Sequence record: PV158447.1
DNA length: 64,000 nucleotides
Direction: 5' to 3' (one strand)
The translations under genes were made by a program, and so were the position numbers. Each line of letters opens with the position of its first letter. Position 1 is the first letter of the stretch. This document shows, piece by piece, positions 3,493-62,157 of the stretch. The notes below the pieces were generated by a model. It had not been told where the DNA came from. It searched no databases and worked only from the letters and a program-made list of their open reading frames with translations.

Positions 3493-4339
3493 CGTATTAA
3501 GTTTGGGGAACGTCATTCTTGCAGGGTCTGGTAAGAAAGGAATCCTAAAGCCGAATGGGGAAGGGGTTTACCGTCTCAATGCAGGTGGGTTCAATATCCC
3601 TAACTCTTCAGGCATTGGTTACCCAATGAACGATTACTTGATAGAACAAGTCGACAAAAACAGTGACTTGAACCGTCGGGTGAAATTGGGTTACTGCAAG
3701 ATGGAAGTGGAACATCCCCAACCCTTCGTCTATGTGGAAGAGAATGGTGTTCGGTATCGCAAACCGATCACTGATGTCATTGAGTGGATCACTCGCCTCC
3801 GTAGTTATGACCCTACTCAAATCTGTGGTCTGATTAGTCAGATCGATTGGGAGTTTGAAAACCCCAACGATATGTCTAAACCAGTCTACACGTTTATCCA
3901 CTGTGAAGCGTTCGGCCCGCGCGGTCCTGAGTTTGCTGAATCACTTTCCAATCCTCGTCATAACACGGCAGTATCCATCCGTACTCAGATCTCTCCGTGG
4001 CAACCAGGTCAGCTCCAACGCAATATCGAATACTGGACTGGTTTCGATTGGGTGAGTGAACCTGGAATGGTCCATGCCAACAAACACATGACAGCTGGTT
4101 GTGAATCTTTCCTCAGTGATCTCTCCATTGGGAGTAACGTTCAGAAGTTCAACGTAGGTGTTGTTCTGGAACGTTTGGATGATGCTATTAAAACCTCAGC
4201 AAACGACGCTGAAGCGCTTGCAAGGGTTGGTGGTATGGAAGCCCTGGATGACTTTACTAAGATCCTCACGGAGCTTAAGAAGGGTTATAAACGTGGTGAC
4301 ACGATTCGTGCTGCGGTAAGTATGACCGATGTATTCTAA
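3485..4339 (+). CDS. Prohead protease (phiKZ gp175 / SPN3US gp245 family)
   Basis: EVEHP (His), AVSIRT (Ser) and GFDWVSEPG (Asp) motifs; C-terminal CES/MEA autocleavage-like sites. ATG 3485 has better RBS spacing than 3476. Confidence 0.85.
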   Translation: MSNVLSLGNVILAGSGKKGILKPNGEGVYRLNAGGFNIPNSSGIGYPMNDYLIEQVDKNSDLNRRVKLGYCKMEVEHPQPFVYVEENGVRYRKPITDVIEWITRLRSYDPTQICGLISQIDWEFENPNDMSKPVYTFIHCEAFGPRGPEFAESLSNPRHNTAVSIRTQISPWQPGQLQRNIEYWTGFDWVSEPGMVHANKHMTAGCESFLSDLSIGSNVQKFNVGVVLERLDDAIKTSANDAEALARVGGMEALDDFTKILTELKKGYKRGDTIRAAVSMTDVF

Positions 4340-4989: not shown

Positions 4990-5022
4990 TCTATATTTTT
5001 TCAGACATATATAATTAACGTG
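4990..5022 (+). promoter_or_regulatory. Putative early (vRNAP) promoter
   Basis: TCTATATTTTTTCAGACATATATAATTAACGTG, identical to 56661-56693; resembles the phiKZ early TATATTAC-type motif. Confidence 0.7.
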
Positions 5023-5115
5023 AGCAAAGTCTCAGGGGAACCAACAGGTCATCCTCTTCTTCAGTCTGTACTGATTCGGTACAGGCTTACTAGATTCTCC
5101 AATGGAGTTTATAAA

Positions 5116-6901: not shown

Positions 6902-6934
6902 TCTATATTTTTTCAAACCTATATTACCAAGGTG
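6902..6934 (+). promoter_or_regulatory. Putative early promoter
   Basis: TCTATATTTTTTCAAACCTATATTACCAAGGTG, containing TATATTAC. Confidence 0.7.
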
Positions 6935-6983
6935 TATGAAGAAGAAATCAATTTAGGTATTAATAACCATAAAGGACAGTTTC

Positions 6984-10699: not shown

Positions 10700-10732
10700 C
10701 CATTTTATTTTAGACATATATTATTAAAGTGT
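10700..10732 (+). promoter_or_regulatory. Putative early promoter
   Basis: CCATTTTATTTTAGACATATATTATTAAAGTGT; flanks shared with the 62083 and 6902 copies. Confidence 0.7.
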
Positions 10733-10788
10733 ATGAAGAAGAAATAAGTTTGTACATATTCAACTAACTACCTAACGGGGTAAATCAA

Positions 10789-23530: not shown

Positions 23531-23560
23531 CAGAGTAGAGACCTTCGGGTCTCTACTCTG
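23531..23560 (+). terminator. Intrinsic terminator (UUCG loop)
   Basis: CAGAGTAGAGACC-TTCG-GGTCTCTACTCTG. Confidence 0.8.
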
Positions 23561-23618
23561 TTATGTTTGTGGGATCTTTTGTTAGTCTAATATAGTAAAC
23601 TATTAAGGATCCACCGAA

Positions 23619-30117: not shown

Positions 30118-30199
30118 AGTCGACTCCTTGGTTATTAATAAGCGTACAAAAGATCGGAGAACAAAAAAACATCACCCTCACCCCCTAAGGAGCGAGAGT

Positions 30200-30705
30200 G
30201 AGTTTCAAAGGTACAACTACGCTTCCCACTGTAATCTAACCCGAGTAGACTCCTGGCCAAGGAGAATCTTCAAAGTTTGATTACAGTAGGCTGAGCAGTT
30301 AATCTACACAACTTCCCGACGTGTCGATCGGGCGGACTGTTTGACTGGACTTAAACTGGACACCCTCCTCAGAGGCAGTAATAAGTTAGTCACCGGGAAC
30401 GAATCCCGTCTTGCATAACACAGTTAGATCATGCAAGTATTTGATCACCATTCTCCGGGGAAAACTCGGAGGCGTGGGTGAGTAAGAGGATCCAGGGACA
30501 GGTCGATGTCTTTATCACTGTAGTGATAAATTGAACACGGTTGCTTATATTCCATTACAACGATGGCAGCTAGCGATTGTGTATTTTGGTAACGACATTT
30601 TGACAGTTGTTTGGATCCAATGAGTTTTCTTCCTGAAGCGAGGTCCCCACTCCAACCTACCACGAAAACATCAGTTAACGAAGTAAATTGTCTCCAGGAA
30701 GAAAA
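30200..30705 (-). ncRNA. Candidate large structured ncRNA downstream of the tRNAs (class unassigned)
   Basis: No credible CDS; many nested inverted repeats; followed on the minus strand by a G-rich stem and T-tract at about 30163-30200. Confidence 0.35.
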
Positions 30706-30708
30706 GGG

Positions 30709-30785
30709 GAGAGTGTTCTTGGAATCGAACCAAGGCAATCCCTCAGATGTGGCGAGGGCGACTTTCCAATCGTCTTTAACACTCT
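30709..30785 (-). ncRNA. Non-canonical tRNA-like element
   Basis: AGAGTGTT/AACACTCT acceptor stem, D arm GAC-GATTGGAAA-GTC, CCCTC/GAGGG stem with a 9-nt loop, T arm CTTGG-TTCGATT-CCAAG; no encoded CCA. Confidence 0.65.
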
Positions 30786-30790
30786 TTGTT

Positions 30791-30876
30791 TGGTGCGGGA
30801 TCCCGGAATCGAACCGGGATGACCGAAGTCGAGGGATTTTAAATCCCTTGTGTCTAACCAATTTCACCAATCCCGC
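30791..30876 (-). tRNA. trnL: tRNA-Leu (UAA)
   Basis: GCGGGAT/ATCCCGC acceptor, AGGGA-TTTAAAA-TCCCT anticodon arm, long variable arm, CCCGG-TTCGATT-CCGGG, encoded CCA. Confidence 0.95.
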
Positions 30877-30910
30877 TGATGCCGTCCCGTAGAACGGCGG
30901 TGCTGGGTTT

Positions 30911-31159
30911 TCAGCCAGCGTTGAAAGACACGCAGATCACCCCGGCAGGAATGCCTCCAGCAGAGCGACCAATTAGTGTGACTATGAGATCTTCAGGCAG
31001 AACTGGCCAAGAGTTTGATCCTCGGGCAGCGTCTTCGATATCATATCCGGCAGGATGCGTATATCTAGCAACCGATTCTGTCTCAGCAATGATAACGAAT
31101 GAATCGTACTCATCGTAGTCCACACTATCTGTTCTTTCAACTTTATAGATGTTCATCAT
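30911..31159 (-). CDS. Hypothetical protein (82 aa)
   Basis: AGGAA RBS; YDEYDSFVIIAE pattern common in small phage proteins. Confidence 0.7.
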   Translation of the reverse strand: MMNIYKVERTDSVDYDEYDSFVIIAETESVARYTHPAGYDIEDAARGSNSWPVLPEDLIVTLIGRSAGGIPAGVICVSFNAG

Positions 31160-31184
31160 TTCAACAGTTCCTATTGTCGTCTAT

Positions 31185-31373
31185 TTAGTCGCAAAAGGAC
31201 TTAGACTCTAGGAAGCATCTACTTTTAAACATCTTCATCCACGTCCCATGGGCGCGTGGGTACTCTACCGTCTCGGTAGTTGTTCCAGCTCTCACCAAGG
31301 CAACAGCATCGGTCTTGTGTAGTGTCGATCGGCCATATTGGCGGAAAACTACTAGGTGACCAAGGCGTGACAT
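31185..31373 (-). CDS. Hypothetical protein (62 aa)
   Basis: Short ORF co-oriented with its neighbours; weak support. Confidence 0.4.
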   Translation of the reverse strand: MSRLGHLVVFRQYGRSTLHKTDAVALVRAGTTTETVEYPRAHGTWMKMFKSRCFLESKSFCD

Positions 31374-31386
31374 GATGACAACTGTA

Positions 31387-31860
31387 CTGGGTCATGACCC
31401 AGGTTAGGTGGGGTACTTTGAGGTATCGAAGAGCAAGATCCGTGAGAGGAATGCCCTAGACCTGAAACGGATCTCTTTGTGCAAGGAGAACATCTCAAAG
31501 TCCCCTAACTGTTAAACTGTTTGCTATAGAATAGCAAACAGTTTAATTTTTAATATCCACTTTTTAAATGGATATTAAAAATCGCTATCTCTAACAGAGT
31601 GAAATAGCGAAAGAAAAGAATCATGAAAAGAAAAACCTAGTGACAACAACGAAGAGTGCAAACTTGGAAACACAACCCTTCTTAATATACTCTCTACATT
31701 GAGAATTCATTAAGAAGAGCAGGAACGTGGGAGGAGTTCACGTTCCTTACTCTTTCACTATAAGAGGAGTCGAAGGAAATGGCTAACCTTCTTAATGAAC
31801 ACTCTGTTCAAATATCCATTAAGAAGTAGAGTGGTCTTGGGAGCCACCACTCTACTCGAT
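31387..31860. repeat. Tandem array of inverted repeats and palindromes (non-coding)
   Basis: At least 8 hairpins or palindromes with 7-16 bp stems; two share the stem CTTCTTAAT/ATTAAGAAG. Confidence 0.85.
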
Positions 31861-31987
31861 TACGGTAAGGAGGTATTTAATGTGCAACTGAAGCGCAAGC
31901 CAAAGCGGAGCTATCACTTCCAGATGTTTACTTGTTAAAATAAACATGTGTGAAGTCAGTTCTTTTTTGAACATATAATAACAAGTT

Positions 31988-32020
31988 CCATATTTTTTCA
32001 AACCTATATTATCGACATGT
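31988..32020 (+). promoter_or_regulatory. Putative early promoter
   Basis: CCATATTTTTTCAAACCTATATTATCGACATGT. Confidence 0.7.
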
Positions 32021-32052
32021 ACAATCTCGTACAGTTATTTAGGAACATCGTC

Positions 32053-34920: not shown

Positions 34921-35182
34921 CTTGTTTTCTCAATCTGGTTTCTATTTTCTGATTCCGCATAGACCTATCTATCACTAGGAAGTAAACCACTGGGTGGAAT
35001 GGGGTAGGGGGCTTTATGTGTTAACCAGTCCAGTTCAAACAAGTTGGAATATATTAAGCGTTATGAACGAAGTGAATAACATCCTATTATCTTTATCAGT
35101 GAGGTTGAAACTATCAGATAAAAAAGACTAAAAAAAGAACGAATGAATAAAAACCATTTAGAAATCACAAAGGAATAAGAGA
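34921..35182. repeat. Intergenic element B (shares a block with element C)
   Basis: ATGAACGAAGTGAAT at 35063-35077 is identical to 37669-37683, with similar downstream sequence. Confidence 0.6.
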
Positions 35183-37382: not shown

Positions 37383-37439
37383 CTTCCCACCTCCTAACCT
37401 CAATGGGTTAGGAGGTATTTCTCTTATGAGTATTTATTT

Positions 37440-37800
37440 TTTAGTAGTCGATACATATACTATGTAATTGTTTCACTTCTACTTTCGCTTTTAACTCATT
37501 TTCTTATCTATTTTCAAACTCTTTTCTTACTCACTTTTATGGTGATTGAGGAGGGGTTTGGGGTGGAGCAGAAGGTGGTCGTCAGGAGCAATTACCTAGT
37601 CAGTAAAGGCCGAGAGGCCAGTTTGATTAGTTATTAAAGGAAAAGTGATTAGGATAAGGAATAGAGGAATGAACGAAGTGAATGACTTCCTTATTCCTAA
37701 CTCACTTGACTGAAGAAAATCAGAGAAATGAATTAGAGAAGATTATTAACCTTATCTGGAGAGAGATCTCTGGGTAGGGTAGGGTCTATTATGTCCATCG
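37440..37800 (+). repeat. Intergenic element C (modular, structured)
   Basis: TATACTATGTA, pyrimidine tract, TCAC/GTGA hairpin, GAGGAGGGGTTTGGGGTGG, GGCC-GAGA-GGCC, long hairpin around GAACGAAGTGA. Confidence 0.65.
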
Positions 37801-37812
37801 TTAAATTGATCT

Positions 37813-37844
37813 CCATTTATTTTGAAATAGATATTATCTAAGGG
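37813..37844 (+). promoter_or_regulatory. Putative early promoter
   Basis: CCATTTATTTTGAAATAGATATTATCTAAGGG. Confidence 0.65.
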
Positions 37845-37974
37845 AATGGAAAAGTTAATGTAAACGTTTATATTTGATTTAAAGAGTTAAGGTAAGGAAA
37901 GTTACTGAGACTAGAGAAAGAATTGAATAGAGATCGATACAGAGCGTTTAAACAACATTTAGGAGAATAGAAAG

Positions 37975-38673
37975 ATGAGCTTTAAAGAGAACTTTACCAC
38001 ACTGGTAGGAATGTCCTGTAGTTTCTACTACCAAGATCAGTTTATTCCCCGTATCAACAAAATGATGGAAGAAGGGAGGAGTGAGATCGGTATTTTAAAT
38101 TCCTTTATCTTCAATCATTTCAATTTGGTACGTCTGGAGAATGGTAACTACCAGATAGAAGCTTTTGTTCGAGATGAACACGTAAAGGACCTTCATGGAG
38201 AAAAAATCAAGGAATTTACCAGAGATCACTATCTGAAGTATTATCGCGCTGTTGAAAGGCATGTGGGGGTGGTTTCCAAAGAGAAGTTGGAAAGTGCTAT
38301 TTGTGATGAACTCAACAACGATAATGCCGAATTCAAATTCAAGAAGAATTGGAGAAGGAAAGTTTTAGGTTGTGGGATTTCTACTGTCGGGAGATTGACC
38401 TGGTGGTTTGATATTCGCTTGGTCCCTGATAATCAAACTGCTCATAATGGGACTAAGGTCGTATGGTCGATAGATGAGGCAGGAATGATCGATCGGTGGC
38501 ACAAAGGTAACGTCATCGCCAGCTACATGGAAGACAACTGGCATCTTCCTGAGCAATCCATCGTTTTACAGAACGTAAAACTGTCAGATAAGAATGAGAA
38601 CTACTACAAACAGGTTCTGAGTCGTGTATTGGCCAAAGAACTGATGAAACGTTTGAAAAGCCAGGTATTGTAA
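37975..38673 (+). CDS. Hypothetical protein (232 aa)
   Basis: AGGAG RBS. Confidence 0.72.
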   Translation: MSFKENFTTLVGMSCSFYYQDQFIPRINKMMEEGRSEIGILNSFIFNHFNLVRLENGNYQIEAFVRDEHVKDLHGEKIKEFTRDHYLKYYRAVERHVGVVSKEKLESAICDELNNDNAEFKFKKNWRRKVLGCGISTVGRLTWWFDIRLVPDNQTAHNGTKVVWSIDEAGMIDRWHKGNVIASYMEDNWHLPEQSIVLQNVKLSDKNENYYKQVLSRVLAKELMKRLKSQVL

Positions 38674-38707
38674 TAAATCCATTAACTTAGAAAAGAGGGA
38701 GCAAGAT

Positions 38708-39313
38708 ATGACTAAGAATGAACTGATCTTCAAAATAAAAGAAACTATCTTCCTGACAGAAATGGCCATTGAACAAACCAGATCCCGGAATCCACCCAGT
38801 GTCAGACTCTCATACACTCTGGAAAATCTTATTACTCTCGCTCGGGATGGGATTAATGACGACATGTCGGAAGCGTTACCTAGCATCAAAGATGGATTGG
38901 AACAGATGTTATCGGTAATTGAACACTCCCACACTCTTGAGGATTGGATAGAAGGTTGGGATCGTTTCGTCTATAAAGGTCAACGTTTCTTTACCTTTAT
39001 TGATCCAGGCTCGAGTTATTTGAATACGGAAAGTATTCACTCTGATCTGGACAAAGAAACACTGATCAAAGTAATCAAACACATCTATAAAACGACGGGT
39101 GATTATAACCAAGCTGTCCACTACGTAGCGCCACTTCAACAGGATCTGAGAGATCTTTGTCTGTCGCTTGATTTGGATGACGAAGCTTACTTTAAACTTC
39201 TGAAAGAAATGGCCGATGTGACTATGGGAGGCGGCGATTCTTATAACAATATCACAATTGTGTTGTTCGAGTTAATGCGGCGCCGGGATATCCTTAAAAC
39301 TATTGGGGAATAG
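38708..39313 (+). CDS. Hypothetical protein (201 aa)
   Basis: GAGGGAG RBS. Confidence 0.72.
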   Translation: MTKNELIFKIKETIFLTEMAIEQTRSRNPPSVRLSYTLENLITLARDGINDDMSEALPSIKDGLEQMLSVIEHSHTLEDWIEGWDRFVYKGQRFFTFIDPGSSYLNTESIHSDLDKETLIKVIKHIYKTTGDYNQAVHYVAPLQQDLRDLCLSLDLDDEAYFKLLKEMADVTMGGGDSYNNITIVLFELMRRRDILKTIGE

Positions 39314-39318
39314 AGATC

Positions 39319-39837
39319 ATGAAAGAAACCATTAGACCAATACATCGTTTCACTGACCTAACTAGTCAGTTCTTTTGTTACGTAAGTAAAGAGGGTGACG
39401 AAATCTTGTTCAGCCGAACTATGTTAAACTTTGAAGGGTATCGAGAAATCAAGAACATCCGAGAAGCCACCATCTTGATGTTCAATGAGTGTTACTTCTC
39501 TCACTTCGAACTGGACGGTGTTTTGATATTCAAAATCTCTGGTTATTTAGTTAACGGGGAACACATCGGAAATGGGCTGATGGGATCCTTTTCTCACATT
39601 GGAGTTATGATCAGTCCTTGGTATCCGTCAAAGGGATGTGTTAGTAGAGCAATTTATGAACATGCGAAACAAAAGTCCAGGGCTGCCTTTCTGAACACAA
39701 AGATCGAACTCACCGAAGATCAGGTTGAAGATAATCCCAAACCAACCAACATTACCAGAGATAAATTGATTACTTCTGCTATTATCTCTGGGTTGTTCTG
39801 TCTGACTCTCTGGTACGCCCTGTATGGAGTTAAGTGA
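39319..39837 (+). CDS. Hypothetical protein with C-terminal transmembrane helix
   Basis: Ends LITSAIISGLFCLTLWYALYGVK. Confidence 0.7.
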   Translation: MKETIRPIHRFTDLTSQFFCYVSKEGDEILFSRTMLNFEGYREIKNIREATILMFNECYFSHFELDGVLIFKISGYLVNGEHIGNGLMGSFSHIGVMISPWYPSKGCVSRAIYEHAKQKSRAAFLNTKIELTEDQVEDNPKPTNITRDKLITSAIISGLFCLTLWYALYGVK

Positions 39838-40190
39838 TGTTCCGTCGTCTTATCAATAGTTGGGTTAGGAAACGTGTTAAAAAGCTCATGGAGAGCCGTA
39901 CAGTCGACTTGATGTTTATGTCGGACTACAATCACATGGTTAAGCGGAAATCTGGAAGTCGGTACTTTAACTACATCGCTTTAGATGGAAAGATGTACCG
40001 AGCTAAATTTAGGTGGTGGAGAACCAGACACTACATCCATTTTGTCAAAGTCCCGTTCCACTTGGGCAAACAAAGACTCGACCTTCAGAAGTCTCATCAT
40101 TTTATCAGTATCTACATGTTGGATGAGAAATGGTTAGGATTGAAAATAGAATACCGTAATCCTGAAAGACCTCTGGATAAAAGGAAATAA
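39834..40190 (+). CDS. Basic hypothetical protein (118 aa)
   Basis: GTGA overlap, GGAG RBS; R/K-rich. Confidence 0.65.
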   Translation: MMFRRLINSWVRKRVKKLMESRTVDLMFMSDYNHMVKRKSGSRYFNYIALDGKMYRAKFRWWRTRHYIHFVKVPFHLGKQRLDLQKSHHFISIYMLDEKWLGLKIEYRNPERPLDKRK

Positions 40191-40192
40191 TT

Positions 40193-40579
40193 ATGAAAAT
40201 GATCGAAACCGATCTTTACGAAACTCTATATTGTTCTTTAAAGACTGACTACGAAAACAAGAAGTTCACGAAACAGGAAATGGGGCTTGAACTGTTGTCA
40301 CTGGTAACGCAGGGAAGGATTACCGGGGAACCTGGAGAAGTGGCCGGAATGTTTGGTTGTTTCCTGCTAGGAAATTCATCGTCAGACCACTTATTGGAGT
40401 ACTTGGATAAAGTCAGTGAGAAATCCACCTGGGACAATTCGGAATGGATTGGAAAGATTCTATCTGCTATCAGGGCAGAATCTCAAGAAAAACAAAATAC
40501 CCATATCCTGGATTTGTTGGTCACCATTAAACTGTTTGTGATTAAAGATGATCTTGCTTTATTTGCAAGGTCCCTTTAA
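40193..40579 (+). CDS. Hypothetical protein (128 aa)
   Basis: AAGGA RBS. Confidence 0.7.
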   Translation: MKMIETDLYETLYCSLKTDYENKKFTKQEMGLELLSLVTQGRITGEPGEVAGMFGCFLLGNSSSDHLLEYLDKVSEKSTWDNSEWIGKILSAIRAESQEKQNTHILDLLVTIKLFVIKDDLALFARSL

Positions 40580-40615
40580 CTGGGGTTACCATCCTGTAAC
40601 TAAACAGGAGGTATC

Positions 40616-40960
40616 ATGAATGATGAAATAATGTTTAAGTTGTCTAACAAACGTTTCAAGACAGAATACGCCACTAATCCAAGCGGATATAGAAACAACC
40701 TACTCCGACAACTACCTGGAGTGAACGCACATCCTCTTACTTTATCATTTCTGGATAGGAATGTGAGTGAAGAGAAGATGAGAGAGTTTATTGAACTCCA
40801 AACAAAGGTAATGAAAGAAGTATTGGGTAAAACACGTTCTACCGAATCTCGGTTAGGTGAACATGTTCTTTTACTTTGTTCAGATGCTTTCTTTGAGTTA
40901 TCTGGGGAAGAAGTTGAATCGGTTATCCGTAAAGTCTTGAGAGACAGTATCAAGTTGTGA
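40616..40960 (+). CDS. Hypothetical protein (114 aa)
   Basis: AGGAGGT RBS. Confidence 0.72.
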   Translation: MNDEIMFKLSNKRFKTEYATNPSGYRNNLLRQLPGVNAHPLTLSFLDRNVSEEKMREFIELQTKVMKEVLGKTRSTESRLGEHVLLLCSDAFFELSGEEVESVIRKVLRDSIKL

Positions 40961-40994
40961 TCTGATTGATGGTGAAATGGGTATTTTACAAATC

Positions 40995-41350
40995 AAAATG
41001 TATACTATGTATTTCACCGTCTTTTCTCTGACTGTTTTTCTTCTACTTCTCTCTGATTCTCTTCTTACACTTTTGAGTGTTTAGGAGGGGGTTTGGGGGT
41101 GGTCAGGAAGGAACTCGGTCAGGAAGGAATGAAGGTCAAATACCGAAAAGATCGAAAAGATACGGGGGTTGAGGCGGAAGCCTAATTAGTGATTATTGAG
41201 AAGAGAGATAGAGAAAGAGATTAAGAAGAATAGATAAGAGAATTACATTGAATTGAGATAAGGATTAGGGAAAGGGGGTCCGGGGGAAAACCCAAAAATG
41301 AAGAATTAAACTCACTTGGGAGAAATCCTGAGTGGGTAAGGGTTTTGTTT
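40995..41350 (+). repeat. Intergenic element D (homologous to element C)
   Basis: TATACTATGTA, pyrimidine tract, ACAC/GTGT hairpin, AGGAGGGGGTTTGGGGGTGG, AGGC-GGAA-GCCT, purine tract, GGGGGTCCGGGGG. Confidence 0.65.
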
Positions 41351-41398
41351 GTTCACTGTTAAATTCATTAATTGCACTATTTAGATTAAAGAGAGGAA

Positions 41399-43599: not shown

Positions 43600-43632
43600 C
43601 CATTTATTTTCAAATAGATATTATTAATATGT
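43600..43632 (+). promoter_or_regulatory. Putative early promoter
   Basis: CCATTTATTTTCAAATAGATATTATTAATATGT. Confidence 0.68.
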
Positions 43633-43663
43633 ATAAACAACCAATAAACATTTAGGGGTTAAT

Positions 43664-48508: not shown

Positions 48509-48525
48509 TATCTTTTTTTATTCTT

Positions 48526-48559
48526 TCTATATTTTTTCAAATAGATATTATTCTAATGT
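48526..48559 (+). promoter_or_regulatory. Putative early promoter
   Basis: TCTATATTTTTTCAAATAGATATTATTCTAATG. Confidence 0.68.
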
Positions 48560-55425: not shown

Positions 55426-56508
55426 TTATCTATTTTTGACTTCTTTCCAGAGTTCCAAGTAGAACTTTTTCCAATAAGGATCAAGGATTTGATTACCATT
55501 GAAATTCTCATTGATCCTGAAGAAGACTTCTAGCGAACTCTCCTCCATTCCATCTTCGTAACCCAAGAAGTCCTGATACTTCAGTAATCCGTTCATCCAG
55601 TACAAACTAGAAAGAGTGTAGACCCAAGCCAATTGGACAAACATCATTGTTTTGGGATGAAATGGAACAATGGTTTCCGGAATCGACATGCCAGAGTAAA
55701 TGGGACTGAACAACGTTGTGTATTCAGAGAAGTTCTTAACCCCATTGACCTTAAGGTATCGAAGTAACCAAGAACAATAACTGTCAAGTCGCTCTGTATA
55801 AGACTCCATTGCAAACCCAGCAGATTGGACTTCAACTTTAACACCTTCGGAAACAAGATTAAAGAGAACAACATTGTTATGTTCACGATAGAACTTAATC
55901 AGTTCCAAAAAACAATAGTGATGTGGAGAAAGCCCAACGTTGATCCCATTCTGAATACGATGTTTCAAGTAAAACCAATAACCCGCAGCCAGTTTAATAG
56001 GATCTAACTCAACAACGGAGTAGGTGTCATTAGGAAGCGTCCTAGAAACGGCGTCAGTCAATTCCTTTGGGTTCCAGTAGTGTTTGGTCCCGGTGGTCAT
56101 GATCGTTCTCAGAGCACTTCCCGTTTCCCCCTTATCGAAGTCATAAACAGTTTCTTCATAAGGAGTAACAATCAATGTCCGATGATTACTCTCCGGGAAC
56201 AAAGTCAAAGAGAAGTCCTTTCCCCTATTATAAATAGAGGTGAATTTAACTTGACTTGCAACCTTCCGAATGTTCAATTCCAAGTTTAACTTCAACGTAT
56301 CAACATCCCAAGTGGGGTCGATAGAGAGTTGGAGTAGAAACTGAACTAACGGATTCTGGTTGGGAAGTACAATGTTACCCATGCTGTAATGTTCTAGACA
56401 CTTATCAAAGTTTCTGTCTAGGATCTTCCTTAACGTACCTAACGGCGGAAACGCTGGAAGTGCTCTAACAGGTCTCCCAGACTTAATGTGGTATTGTGCC
56501 ATTTCCAT
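55426..56508 (-). CDS. Conserved virion protein (phiKZ gp52-like position)
   Basis: Minus-strand gene between the DNA polymerase and chimallin, as in related phages. Confidence 0.55.
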   Translation of the reverse strand: MEMAQYHIKSGRPVRALPAFPPLGTLRKILDRNFDKCLEHYSMGNIVLPNQNPLVQFLLQLSIDPTWDVDTLKLNLELNIRKVASQVKFTSIYNRGKDFSLTLFPESNHRTLIVTPYEETVYDFDKGETGSALRTIMTTGTKHYWNPKELTDAVSRTLPNDTYSVVELDPIKLAAGYWFYLKHRIQNGINVGLSPHHYCFLELIKFYREHNNVVLFNLVSEGVKVEVQSAGFAMESYTERLDSYCSWLLRYLKVNGVKNFSEYTTLFSPIYSGMSIPETIVPFHPKTMMFVQLAWVYTLSSLYWMNGLLKYQDFLGYEDGMEESSLEVFFRINENFNGNQILDPYWKKFYLELWKEVKNR

Positions 56509-56660
56509 TACCCATATTTAAATAGTAAAGTATATTACTATTATATGTACAAAACTTCCTTACCTTATGGTAAGGAGTAAGCGGTAGATATACGTTCATT
56601 TTGAATTTATCCATACGATTTGAACGGAACTGTTCTGAAAAACCGCTAGATTTTTACAGG

Positions 56661-56693
56661 TCTATATTTTTTCAGACATATATAATTAACGTG
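56661..56693 (+). promoter_or_regulatory. Putative early promoter of chimallin
   Basis: 33-nt exact match to 4990-5022. Confidence 0.72.
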
Positions 56694-56769
56694 TAAGGCC
56701 AATGAGATATAATCAAAAGCTTTCATTTTAATTAGGAACAACGATAACCATAGTAAGGTAGGAAAAGAA

Positions 56770-58749
56770 ATGATCTCTGACGACAAAGCTCCTGATTTCG
56801 ACGCACCTCTCGGTCAACCGAAGTCCGGTGAAACACAGCTCACCGATTTCAACAACTCTTTCGAACAACCCACCCAACCCATCAATAAAGGAAACGAAAA
56901 CATGTCTGGTATCAATTCCCTGGTTTCTCTGCTGTCCCAAGTCAACCTGTCCGCTTCCCACAACACCGTTCCGGAAATGGACGAAATCGCCAAAGCGATC
57001 AAAGAACGTGTCAAGGTTCTGAAGTCCAACACTGCGGCCGAAGCCCAGAAAGCTGCCCTGCCTGCCGACATCCAGATCCTGACCAACAACATCAGCCCTA
57101 GCCTGCCTGGTTTCGCGATGTACACCATCTTCGGGGCCGAGTGCTACGTTATGCCGGTTCTGTTCTACAAGGCCGGGATCACCGACGTGACCGACACCGT
57201 CCAGTTCCACAACGAAGCGCCGCGCGGTTTCGCGAAGGTTCCGTCTTCCTTCATGACCGGTGATCTGAGCACCAAGGTCAAGCAGAACTTCACCACCATC
57301 GGTGGTAAACAGATGCAAACCGTTTCGATCGTCAACCCGCGTGTGGTCAACCTGGAGCGTTACCTGAAGGCCGGTCTGCACGGCGAAGATCTGGTCCGTG
57401 TTGTTGCGGCTGGTCTGCTGGAAGACTTCGTGACTGGTCTGATGTCCCTGGGTTCTCTGCTCCAAGTCAAAGCCGTCGGCAACCTGGAAAGTCCGTTCGG
57501 TACCCGCAAGCTGTATGGCGAGCACGGTGCCGCGATGGCGCGTGTTGAAACTGCGACAGGTGTGGATGCAACTGGCCTGGCGACCCCGTACAACCTGACT
57601 GTCAAACTGGCTACCACCGGTAAGAACGGTCAACAGTACAACAACAACCAGATCTCCAAGACCATCATCACCACTCCGCTGAACGTCCAGCTGGAAGCAA
57701 TGAGTCGCGAACAGTTCGCTCAAGCTCGTATGGCACGTCCTGGTCAATCTGGTGTTGGTCCGCTGGTCCCGATCGTGTCCGTCGGTCACTCCATTCCTGG
57801 TGAAACCCTGGGTAACAACTGTTCCCCGCTGAGCATCATCCTGGGTCTGTATGCCGCTCTGGCTGCCAACGCCGCCCCTGCCCTGGCAGAAGCTTACCGT
57901 AACAAGGAAGTGGGTAGCCGTGGTAACCTGAGCAACTTCAACTCCATGATGGTCCAGTATCTGGGTCCGCAAGCGTACGACGCTAATTGCATGTTGACCG
58001 ACAAGAACCTGTCCAACATCGAACTGGTAAACAACTGGATCCGCAACTACGTCTCCACCACCCCGGTGTACGTAGTTGACGCACCGGCTTACCTGGACAA
58101 TGCCTCTACCTCCGAGTTCTATTTCGGCCTGGCTGAGAAAGGTTCCGACTCCGTCTACTACAAGACCGCTATGATCGCTGCCAACCTGCTGAGCAACGGC
58201 AAGTTCATGGAGCTGGCCACTGCTAACAAGGCTGACAACTCCCGTGACAAGTCCAAGCAGTGGGCTCCTGGCGACGCGATCCTGTTGCAAACCGGTACCC
58301 TGCGCCCGCGCGGTATTGCGACCAACCCGAAAACCTCCAAGGCTTTCGACCTGGGTGAAATCGACGGGATGTTCCTGCGTCAGAAAGAGTACTTCGGCGA
58401 GAACGAAATCGCTGTCGCTGAATATCAAGGCCTGGTACAGGGTTCCACCCACATCCAGGATGCACGTCAGCGTCAGTTCCACATCACCTCTCGTCTGATG
58501 GCGATGACCAACAACACCGCGATCATCGAAGGTTGGGATATGCGTTTCATCGTGTCCCCTGCTTTCGCGAACACCCTGCGTGATGCGATGGTCAATGCCG
58601 GTACCCTGACTGTATCCGCGAACAACTACGGTGGTCAGTACGTCGCTTCTATCGAGAACACCCTGCTGTCCAACATGATGACTGCTGGGATCCAAGCCGC
58701 TGGTGCCAACGCCAGTTACGGTGGTTCCCCGATGTTCACCATGTTTTAA
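56770..58749 (+). CDS. chmA: Chimallin (phage nuclear shell protein)
   Basis: About 620-660 aa; extreme high-expression codon bias; low-complexity aromatic-tipped C-terminus (NASYGGSPMFTMF); lies between DNA polymerase/gp52 and nvRNAP beta'N, the phiKZ gp54 position. Confidence 0.82.
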   Translation: MISDDKAPDFDAPLGQPKSGETQLTDFNNSFEQPTQPINKGNENMSGINSLVSLLSQVNLSASHNTVPEMDEIAKAIKERVKVLKSNTAAEAQKAALPADIQILTNNISPSLPGFAMYTIFGAECYVMPVLFYKAGITDVTDTVQFHNEAPRGFAKVPSSFMTGDLSTKVKQNFTTIGGKQMQTVSIVNPRVVNLERYLKAGLHGEDLVRVVAAGLLEDFVTGLMSLGSLLQVKAVGNLESPFGTRKLYGEHGAAMARVETATGVDATGLATPYNLTVKLATTGKNGQQYNNNQISKTIITTPLNVQLEAMSREQFAQARMARPGQSGVGPLVPIVSVGHSIPGETLGNNCSPLSIILGLYAALAANAAPALAEAYRNKEVGSRGNLSNFNSMMVQYLGPQAYDANCMLTDKNLSNIELVNNWIRNYVSTTPVYVVDAPAYLDNASTSEFYFGLAEKGSDSVYYKTAMIAANLLSNGKFMELATANKADNSRDKSKQWAPGDAILLQTGTLRPRGIATNPKTSKAFDLGEIDGMFLRQKEYFGENEIAVAEYQGLVQGSTHIQDARQRQFHITSRLMAMTNNTAIIEGWDMRFIVSPAFANTLRDAMVNAGTLTVSANNYGGQYVASIENTLLSNMMTAGIQAAGANASYGGSPMFTMF

Positions 58750-58838: not shown

Positions 58839-58872
58839 TCTATAAAAATTAAAACAGATATTATTAAAGCGA
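58839..58872 (+). promoter_or_regulatory. Putative early promoter (variant)
   Basis: TCTATAAAAATTAAAACAGATATTATTAAAGCG. Confidence 0.55.
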
Positions 58873-58905
58873 CCCTAGTAGAAATAAAATAACGAGGAGA
58901 AAGTA

Positions 58906-62082: not shown

Positions 62083-62114
62083 CCATAATTTTTCAGACCT
62101 ATATTACTAAAGTG
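62083..62114 (+). promoter_or_regulatory. Putative early promoter
   Basis: CCATAATTTTTCAGACCTATATTACTAAAGTG, containing TATATTAC. Confidence 0.72.
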
Positions 62115-62157
62115 TATAAGCTATAAGCATTTAACACTTATTTAGGGAGAAAGATTT

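Follow-up and report, generated by a model that had tools for sequence, protein, structure and literature searches.

The DNA analysed here, a 64,000-nucleotide stretch (hereafter the window, in whose positions coordinates are given unless a record or locus is named), is 100% identical to positions 62001-126000 of the record of Aeromonas phage AhC3_1 (PV158447.1, 232,884 bp). It carries two intergenic elements, C (~37464-37797) and D (~41009-41353), which belong to a real, conserved family of plus-strand structured RNAs without known homologue. The elements are conserved across related phages, fold in a strand-specific manner, retain their helices through compensatory changes and show no coding signal. 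There is about an even prospect that C and D are paralogous units of this family, begun at a TATG-type start and serving as stable protein-binding or regulatory RNAs. AhC3_1 itself is unclassified; its Chaoshanvirus relatives are members of the Chimalliviridae, the nucleus-forming jumbo phages.

Element C sits in a 592-bp gap between ORF104 and ORF105 (37383-37974), and element D in a 438-bp gap between ORF110 and ORF111 (40961-41398). Both intervals are without annotation in the GenBank record, in agreement with a preliminary description of this DNA in which no gene feature was thought to explain the elements, and the paper on the AhC3_1 genome is silent about intergenic or noncoding features. 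With the ends revised as above, each unit is ~330-350 nt long. That description, made from the letters alone, had listed a series of motifs shared by C and D, and all of them were recovered on the plus strand in the same order in both: the 11-mer TATACTATGTA (37456 in C, 41001 in D), a pyrimidine tract ending TTCTTAC (~37530, ~41068), a small hairpin (TCAC/GTGA at 37531-37545, ACAC/GTGT at 41067-41080), a G-core (from 37549 and 41083), a GNRA-type hairpin followed by ATTAG (GGCC-GAGA-GGCC at 37608-37619, AGGC-GGAA-GCCT at 41172-41183), a purine-rich tract and a G-rich terminal hairpin (37749-37780, 41310-41337). The 11-mer alone is weak evidence, with two matches against 0.61 expected at up to one mismatch and 11 of 100 shuffles reaching two; the 18-nt G-core is expected 0.03 times by chance, and the collinear arrangement is seen again in related phages. 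Two parts of the earlier account need amending. The pyrimidine tract, small hairpin and G-core are present, but they are not separate modules, making up instead a single long hairpin, of which they are the tip and both arms. The 'dispersed family' does have additional members, although the term overstates the case within AhC3_1, which has two full copies 3.5 kb apart and two short relatives; the G-core and the promoter-like TATACTATG are confined to C and D in the whole 233-kb genome, whereas homologues are found in other chimalliviruses.

The long hairpin is termed domain 1. In C (37464-37595) it comprises 49 pairs, 12 of them U.G, closed by the helix GUAAUUG/CAAUUAC; the 5' pyrimidine arm (37464-37530) is followed by the apical hairpin and the G-rich 3' arm (37546-37595), which contains the G-core (37549-37566). 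Its counterpart in D (41009-41143) has 55 pairs, 11 of them U.G, closed by GUAUUU/AAAUAC, with the apical hairpin at 41067-41080, the G-core at 41083-41102 and ~2.5 tandem GGUCAGGAAGGAA units in the 3' arm. All eight full elements (C, D and six homologues) have the same predicted 5' hairpin of 49-66 bp starting at the G of TATG, in which the pyrimidine tract supplies the 5' arm, the small covarying hairpin forms the tip, and the G-core with two to three tandem 16-20 nt units makes up the 3' arm. Each contains 10-16 U.G pairs, whose U is in the 5' arm without exception, and no more than one G.U pair; only the plus-strand RNA therefore folds well. The minimum free energy of domain 1 is -44.7 kcal/mol in C and -56.9 kcal/mol in D, against -15.6 and -23.2 kcal/mol for the reverse strand. 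When native arms were compared with separately shuffled arms, the full elements gave z-scores of -4.2 to -9.8 (-4.2 for C, -5.4 for D), with none of 200 shuffles as good. This strand asymmetry argues for RNA-level structure on the plus strand.

Compensatory changes across relatives exceed those in shuffled and slid controls, albeit in small sequence sets, and in silico they uphold the earlier suggestion that structure rather than sequence is under selection. For the basal 40 pairs of the long hairpin in five C-type sequences, 91.3% of cells are paired, compared with 85.2% after shuffling; eight pairs have changed on both sides, and the covariation score is 0.258 versus 0.148, neither value being reached in 500 shuffles. 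Slid controls for the same sequences were 29-55% paired. By inspection, the apical hairpins have eight different sequences, every one of which pairs. The closing helices of other phages likewise differ in sequence and keep their pairing (GUAAUUGG/CCAAUUAC in five phages, GUCU/AGAC in LAh10).

Three further hairpins or their equivalents follow domain 1. The GNRA-type hairpin, here H2, is succeeded by a conserved AUUAG in C and by AAUUAG in D, and its five stem variants among homologues all leave pairing intact on inspection. H3 distinguishes two types of element. The C type has an H3 with the 15-nt tip AUGAACGNAGUGAAU; in C itself this hairpin spans 37643-37707, with the conserved tip AUGAACGAAGUGAAU at 37669-37683 and a 3' strand bearing UUCCUUAUUCC, which resembles an anti-Shine-Dalgarno (anti-SD) sequence. 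The outer stem varies between phages and stays paired (UUAGGA/UCCUAA, AUAUGGA/UCCAUAU, GAUGG/CCAUC, GAGAGA/UCCUCUC). The tip can be drawn as AU, UA, tandem G.A, AU and CG pairs capped by a GNA triloop, and its variation is limited to the triloop N and one A-to-G change giving a U.G pair, both structure-neutral. As judged from sequence, this pattern fits an RNA motif and not an ORF of 11-30 codons starting at the tip AUG. In place of H3, G5-UCC-G5 is found in the D type, to which D, LAh10 and the second CF8 element belong. In D a purine-rich tract with very few C (41190-41273), predicted to be unpaired, precedes the signature GGGGGUCCGGGGG plus AAAACCC (41274-41293), which is common to LAh10 and the second CF8 element and whose AAAACCC is able to pair with the tail GGGUUUU; five of the 22 G5 runs of the window fall in this element. 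For the H2-H3 region RNAalifold predicted no pairs when given an unanchored MAFFT alignment, owing to the poor quality of that alignment; anchored folds and covariance models were used instead.

The last hairpin, H4, is followed by a G-tract and a U-rich tail in C (37749-37797, GAGA loop) and by the tail AAGGGUUUUGUUUGUU in D (41310-41353, GAAA loop). A model of H4 plus tail (R1) recognises both (E = 1e-11 and 2e-12) and, over the whole AhC3_1 genome, finds C and D only. Covariation in H4 is moderate: across nine sequences 83.8% of cells are paired and five pairs have changed on both sides, with the score exceeded by four of 500 shuffles. A terminator-like hairpin followed directly by GTTATGTTTGT also occurs upstream of the terminase gene (23538-23575), and the same succession is present in the H4 tails of C (37781-37797), CF8, PS1 and LAh10; from its sequence it looks like a combined terminator/late-promoter cassette.

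Homologous elements were found in at least 10 Aeromonas chimalliviruses of three genera, in DNA that is unannotated or covered by short hypothetical coding sequence (CDS) calls alone, the latter in PS1 and the LAh10 group. The carriers are the Chaoshanvirus phages AerS_266, ZPAH34 and CF8; PS1, PS2, pAEv1810, AVP1 and ACP1 (PS1 and pAEv1810 being Ferozepurvirus); and LAh10, D3, D6 and D9 (LAh10 being a Ludhianavirus). Uncultivated viral contigs, one of them 233 kb long, also have elements. In AerS_266 the element lies upstream of a homologue of ORF105, as in C. The genes downstream in CF8, PS1 and LAh10 have no detectable similarity to each other or to their AhC3_1 counterpart; as the downstream gene varies between phages, the element behaves as an autonomous module. 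CF8 carries a short and a long element in tandem. A scan of IMG/VR with the H3-tip pattern returned one real uncultivated lineage, while the D-type G motif and the closing-strand motif, used as patterns, gave chance matches alone, in unrelated small contigs; one more relative, of the short type, came from a metagenome scan. A scan of GTDB genomes gave no cellular homologue, its two matches in a Dysgonomonas metagenome-assembled genome being discounted because their context was unrelated. The annotated PS1_0024 (L011:9954-10175) and the start of LAh10_186 (L009:3075) overlap the RNA element, and neither CDS is conserved in other phages; PS1_0024 is probably an over-call, and LAh10_186 probably either an over-call or a gene whose start codon was called too early.

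Both elements are preceded by the promoter-like TATACTATG (37456-37464 in C, 41001-41009 in D), and the TATG motif is present in the sequence of all eight full elements, its G opening the closing helix in every homologue. The phiKZ late-promoter consensus is TATG, its G being +1 (PMC4666361). GTTATG precedes the capsid, sheath and terminase genes of AhC3_1, and the spacing of the TATG motif is unlike that of the repeated early-promoter motif of this phage. On these grounds starts are predicted at G37464, the first base of the closing helix of C, and at G41009 in D, which makes the late start of TATG type suggested earlier plausible. The elements resemble phiKZ late units in having TATG with an AT-rich region upstream, and differ from them in that the putative promoter would here drive a highly folded noncoding RNA.

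If C and D are stable protein-binding or regulatory RNAs, the predicted start, timing, 3' end and function would be as follows. Transcription would start at the G of the TATG-type motif, a late promoter of the type used by the non-virion RNA polymerase of the phage. The first 130-160 nt would fold at once into the G.U-rich hairpin of 49-66 bp that includes the 5' end, followed by the small GNRA-type hairpin and then, in the C type, by the conserved-tip hairpin with its anti-SD-like 3' strand or, in the D type, by the G5-UCC-G5 motif; the RNA would end in the GNRA hairpin, G-tracts and U-rich tail. The paired 5' end could protect the RNA from 5'-end-dependent decay, and the repeated helix segments, G-runs and invariant tips might be protein-binding sites or a pairing surface for Shine-Dalgarno-like sequences. 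Late in infection such RNAs may serve as scaffolds, decoys or regulators.

Several observations weigh against this interpretation. The transcript is a prediction, as are its 5' end and timing, and the covariation is drawn from 5-9 related sequences, with part of the alignments fitted to the model. The whole-element fold of D has a z-score of only -1.85. A terminator scan did not call H4 as a canonical intrinsic terminator, 5-9 G-rich nt standing between stem and U-run, and the U-rich tail has a possible pairing partner in A-rich sequence upstream; the RNA may therefore continue into the next gene. No enriched 10-nt complement of the anti-SD-like motif was found in the phage genome, nor was a partner protein or target. 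A CsrA sponge was ruled out, GGA motifs not being conserved across members, and a canonical G-quadruplex (G4) motif seen by eye in ZPAH34 and an uncultivated variant is not conserved across members either.

Continuation of the RNA into the next gene would suit the alternative that survives best, itself judged unlikely: the element as a cis-acting structured leader, the 5' part of a late transcript running into the downstream array of small genes, where it would provide a second, late mode of expression together with message stabilisation, a termination-resistant polymerase or an export mark. A plus-strand gene does follow every element, H4 has no U-run directly after it, and in D, PS1, pAEv1810 and LAh10 the next gene lies 12-50 nt past the tail with no recognisable promoter between. 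That downstream gene, however, is not conserved. Furthermore, an early-type promoter intervenes between element and gene in C, AerS_266 and ZPAH34, the tails of C, CF8, PS1 and LAh10 each supply the next gene with a TATG-like motif, and CF8 has its two elements in tandem.

The preliminary description had offered R-loop or G4 origins as one of its readings. In such an origin a G- and purine-rich transcript would be kept as an R-loop on the C-rich template, cut by the phage RNase H and used to prime DNA synthesis. The phage does encode RNase H, the promoter is followed by runs of four to six G on the non-template strand (with an AT-rich purine tract added in D), the tandem 16-20 nt units resemble iterons, and a related short core, described below, is single-copy and lies at a divergent junction beside nrdB in five phages. 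Such transcription-primed origins are nonetheless decidedly improbable, since selection keeps G.U-rich RNA helices and the G-runs are predicted to lie inside the hairpin, paired with the pyrimidine arm, where nascent RNA should self-fold rather than pair with the template. Cumulative GC skew climbs steadily through 30-44 kb with no inflection at the elements, which is a weak test in a genome mostly transcribed one way, and C and D are without a canonical four-tract G4 motif. Canonical G4 formation was also tried as a family feature and rejected: no arrangement of four tracts of at least three G with loops of 1-7 nt occurs in the window.

Binding of proteins to the repeats as duplex DNA, whether for tethering or organising the genome inside the phage nucleus, as had been proposed, or for control of early promoters, has very little probability. 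Two to three tandem repeat units in the 3' arm and the position of several elements 10-60 bp upstream of an early-type promoter would suit such sites, but neither the strand asymmetry nor the compensatory changes are explained at the level of duplex DNA, and the other early promoters of the window, about ten, are without such elements. Translation of short ORFs, above all of a peptide of 11-30 residues from the H3-tip AUG, can practically be dismissed: in C, AerS_266 and CF8 that AUG does have AAGGA 7-8 nt before it, and an ORF starting MNEV or MNVV is seen by eye in all C-type members, but peptide length and sequence past residue 6 are not conserved, the conserved part has no synonymous change and two differences that are non-synonymous yet structure-neutral, AUG and AAGGA are both base-paired, D-type members have no H3-tip ORF, and homologues share no conserved ORF of 20 codons or more.

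The structured RNAs have no counterpart among known families. Searches against curated Rfam families (6S RF00013, pRNA, CsrB, GOLLD, ROOL, tmRNA and introns among them) returned no relevant match at gathering thresholds or at E up to 10; the only Rfam matches, weak and of a miRNA-precursor-like kind (22 bits or less, E of 0.045 or more), arise because the element contains a long hairpin. Like phi29 pRNA, GOLLD and ROOL, the elements are phage-encoded, structured, noncoding and above typical small RNA size, and GOLLD and ROOL share with them a location near phage tRNA regions; the architecture differs, however, and nothing links the elements to packaging or cage formation. With 6S RNA and adenovirus VA RNA they share a long, imperfect hairpin that takes in the ends of the RNA, which makes a role as protein decoy or sponge conceivable, but they lack the conserved central bubble of 6S RNA and have no known partner. 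The succession of promoter and G-rich transcript recalls ColE1 RNA II (also a folded pre-primer of several hundred nt), T4 oriF and oriG, and mitochondrial CSBII, from which they differ in that their G-runs are predicted to have intramolecular partners and no skew signal is seen. Repeated units and a conserved UCCUUA motif are reminiscent of CsrB/RsmZ sponges and of small RNAs whose C/U-rich motifs pair with Shine-Dalgarno sequences; unlike these, the elements do not conserve GGA, the C-type UCCUUA is paired inside H3 and no target is enriched. AhC3_1 ribosome-binding sites are ordinary AGGAG or AAGGA.

Two shorter relatives are present in AhC3_1. Element B (34921-35182, plus strand) is partly degenerate: it shares the 15-nt tip (35063-35077) and has a pyrimidine arm and a G-tract motif, but neither TATG nor an H3 stem. 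The second (record 3920-4021), in a divergent gap beside nrdB, represents a short core of ~100 nt that consists of a GNNA hairpin, G4-AA-G4, UUUGUUUAU, a hairpin with a C(GNA)G tip and then CAUCCUU; UUUGUUUA and CAUCCU are invariant. This core was found in 21 records, single-copy in each genome and always in unannotated DNA, from phages of seven host genera (Aeromonas, Edwardsiella, Serratia, Klebsiella, Pantoea, Shewanella and, for OBP, Pseudomonas). Loci inspected include those of OBP (L163:2475-2570), pEt-SU (L164:2476-2578), SXP01 (L165:2501-2602), Yubaba (L166:2501-2603), CF8 (L010:5595-5697) and ZPAH34 (L008:890-993). The core adjoins nrdB in AhC3_1, OBP, SXP01 and Yubaba, and a gene of equal size and position in pEt-SU; at five of seven inspected loci it occupies a divergent gap just upstream of an early-type promoter. 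Its cells are 94% paired, four pairs have changed on both sides, and the covariation score is exceeded by two of 500 shuffles. The short-core version of the UCCUUA motif, ACAUCCUUA, agrees at eight of nine bases with ACCUCCUUA, the 3' end of Escherichia coli 16S rRNA.

One half of the short core resembles H4 with its tail and the other H3, the order of the two being the reverse of that in the long elements, and a metagenomic variant (L157) joins the C-type tip with the short-core 3' motif. The short-core model (R2) recognises B weakly (E = 0.058) and does not recognise C and D, so it is common motifs rather than a formal match that connect the short elements with the long ones. A short-core-like sequence also occurs inside the 3' end of annotated ORF181 (record 171738-171842), with GGGGAAG, TTTATATATAG, GATTAC-GAA-GTAATC and ATCCTT (short-core model E = 1.8e-4).

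A more speculative proposal, to which a rather low probability is assigned, would unite these observations in an undescribed RNA system of the chimallivirus clade, with a two-hairpin G-tract core, single-copy in phages of the seven host genera, that has been expanded in Aeromonas phages to RNAs of ~350 nt with a long 5' hairpin; these would act late as anti-SD mimics directed at ribosomes or mRNA, as protein decoys, or else as RNA-primed replication origins of nucleus-forming phages. Literature searches gave no description of these elements. In the literature searched on nucleus-forming jumbo phages almost no noncoding RNAs are described, one review saying merely that phiKZ expresses some, and the reviews searched do not describe replication origins or the rules of RNA handling across the phage nucleus. 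The family offers a defined and conserved RNA that is amenable to experiment, with a predicted start and fold as well as invariant motifs and natural variants. It would deserve an Rfam entry of its own and provide a direct handle for knock-down, pull-down and origin mapping.

The 5' boundary of element C is set by the terminator hairpin of the upstream ORF104 (37389-37416, plus strand), a 12-bp stem with a T-rich tail, and equivalent hairpins stand before the homologues in AerS_266, ZPAH34, CF8, PS1 and pAEv1810. The remainder of the gap (37806-37974), outside the element, consists of the early-type promoter of ORF105 (37806-37840, plus strand), which matches the repeated early-promoter motif, and the leader of that gene. 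This motif of ~35 nt, TCYATATTTTTTCARACMTATATTAYYAA followed by GTGTA or ATGTA, lies upstream of many plus-strand genes of the window (4993-5030, 6905-6940, 10702-10740, 31990-32025, 37806-37840, 43602-43640, 48520-48555, 56664-56700, 58842-58880 and 62085-62120) and presumably represents the early, virion polymerase promoter class of AhC3_1. The six proteins neighbouring the elements matched no known family in Pfam or PHROGs.

Two further intervals of AhC3_1 stand out. The ~1.9 kb at 30118-32016 hold only one tRNA-Leu(TAA) gene (30791-30876, minus strand) and one small annotated ORF, the remainder being unannotated; relatives have other tRNAs in the matching region, and the interval may contain additional RNA genes. 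Outside the window, an unannotated gap of 418 bp (record 56409-56825) separates two adjacent CDSs both called DNA-directed RNA polymerase, and may be an intron or a split-gene junction.

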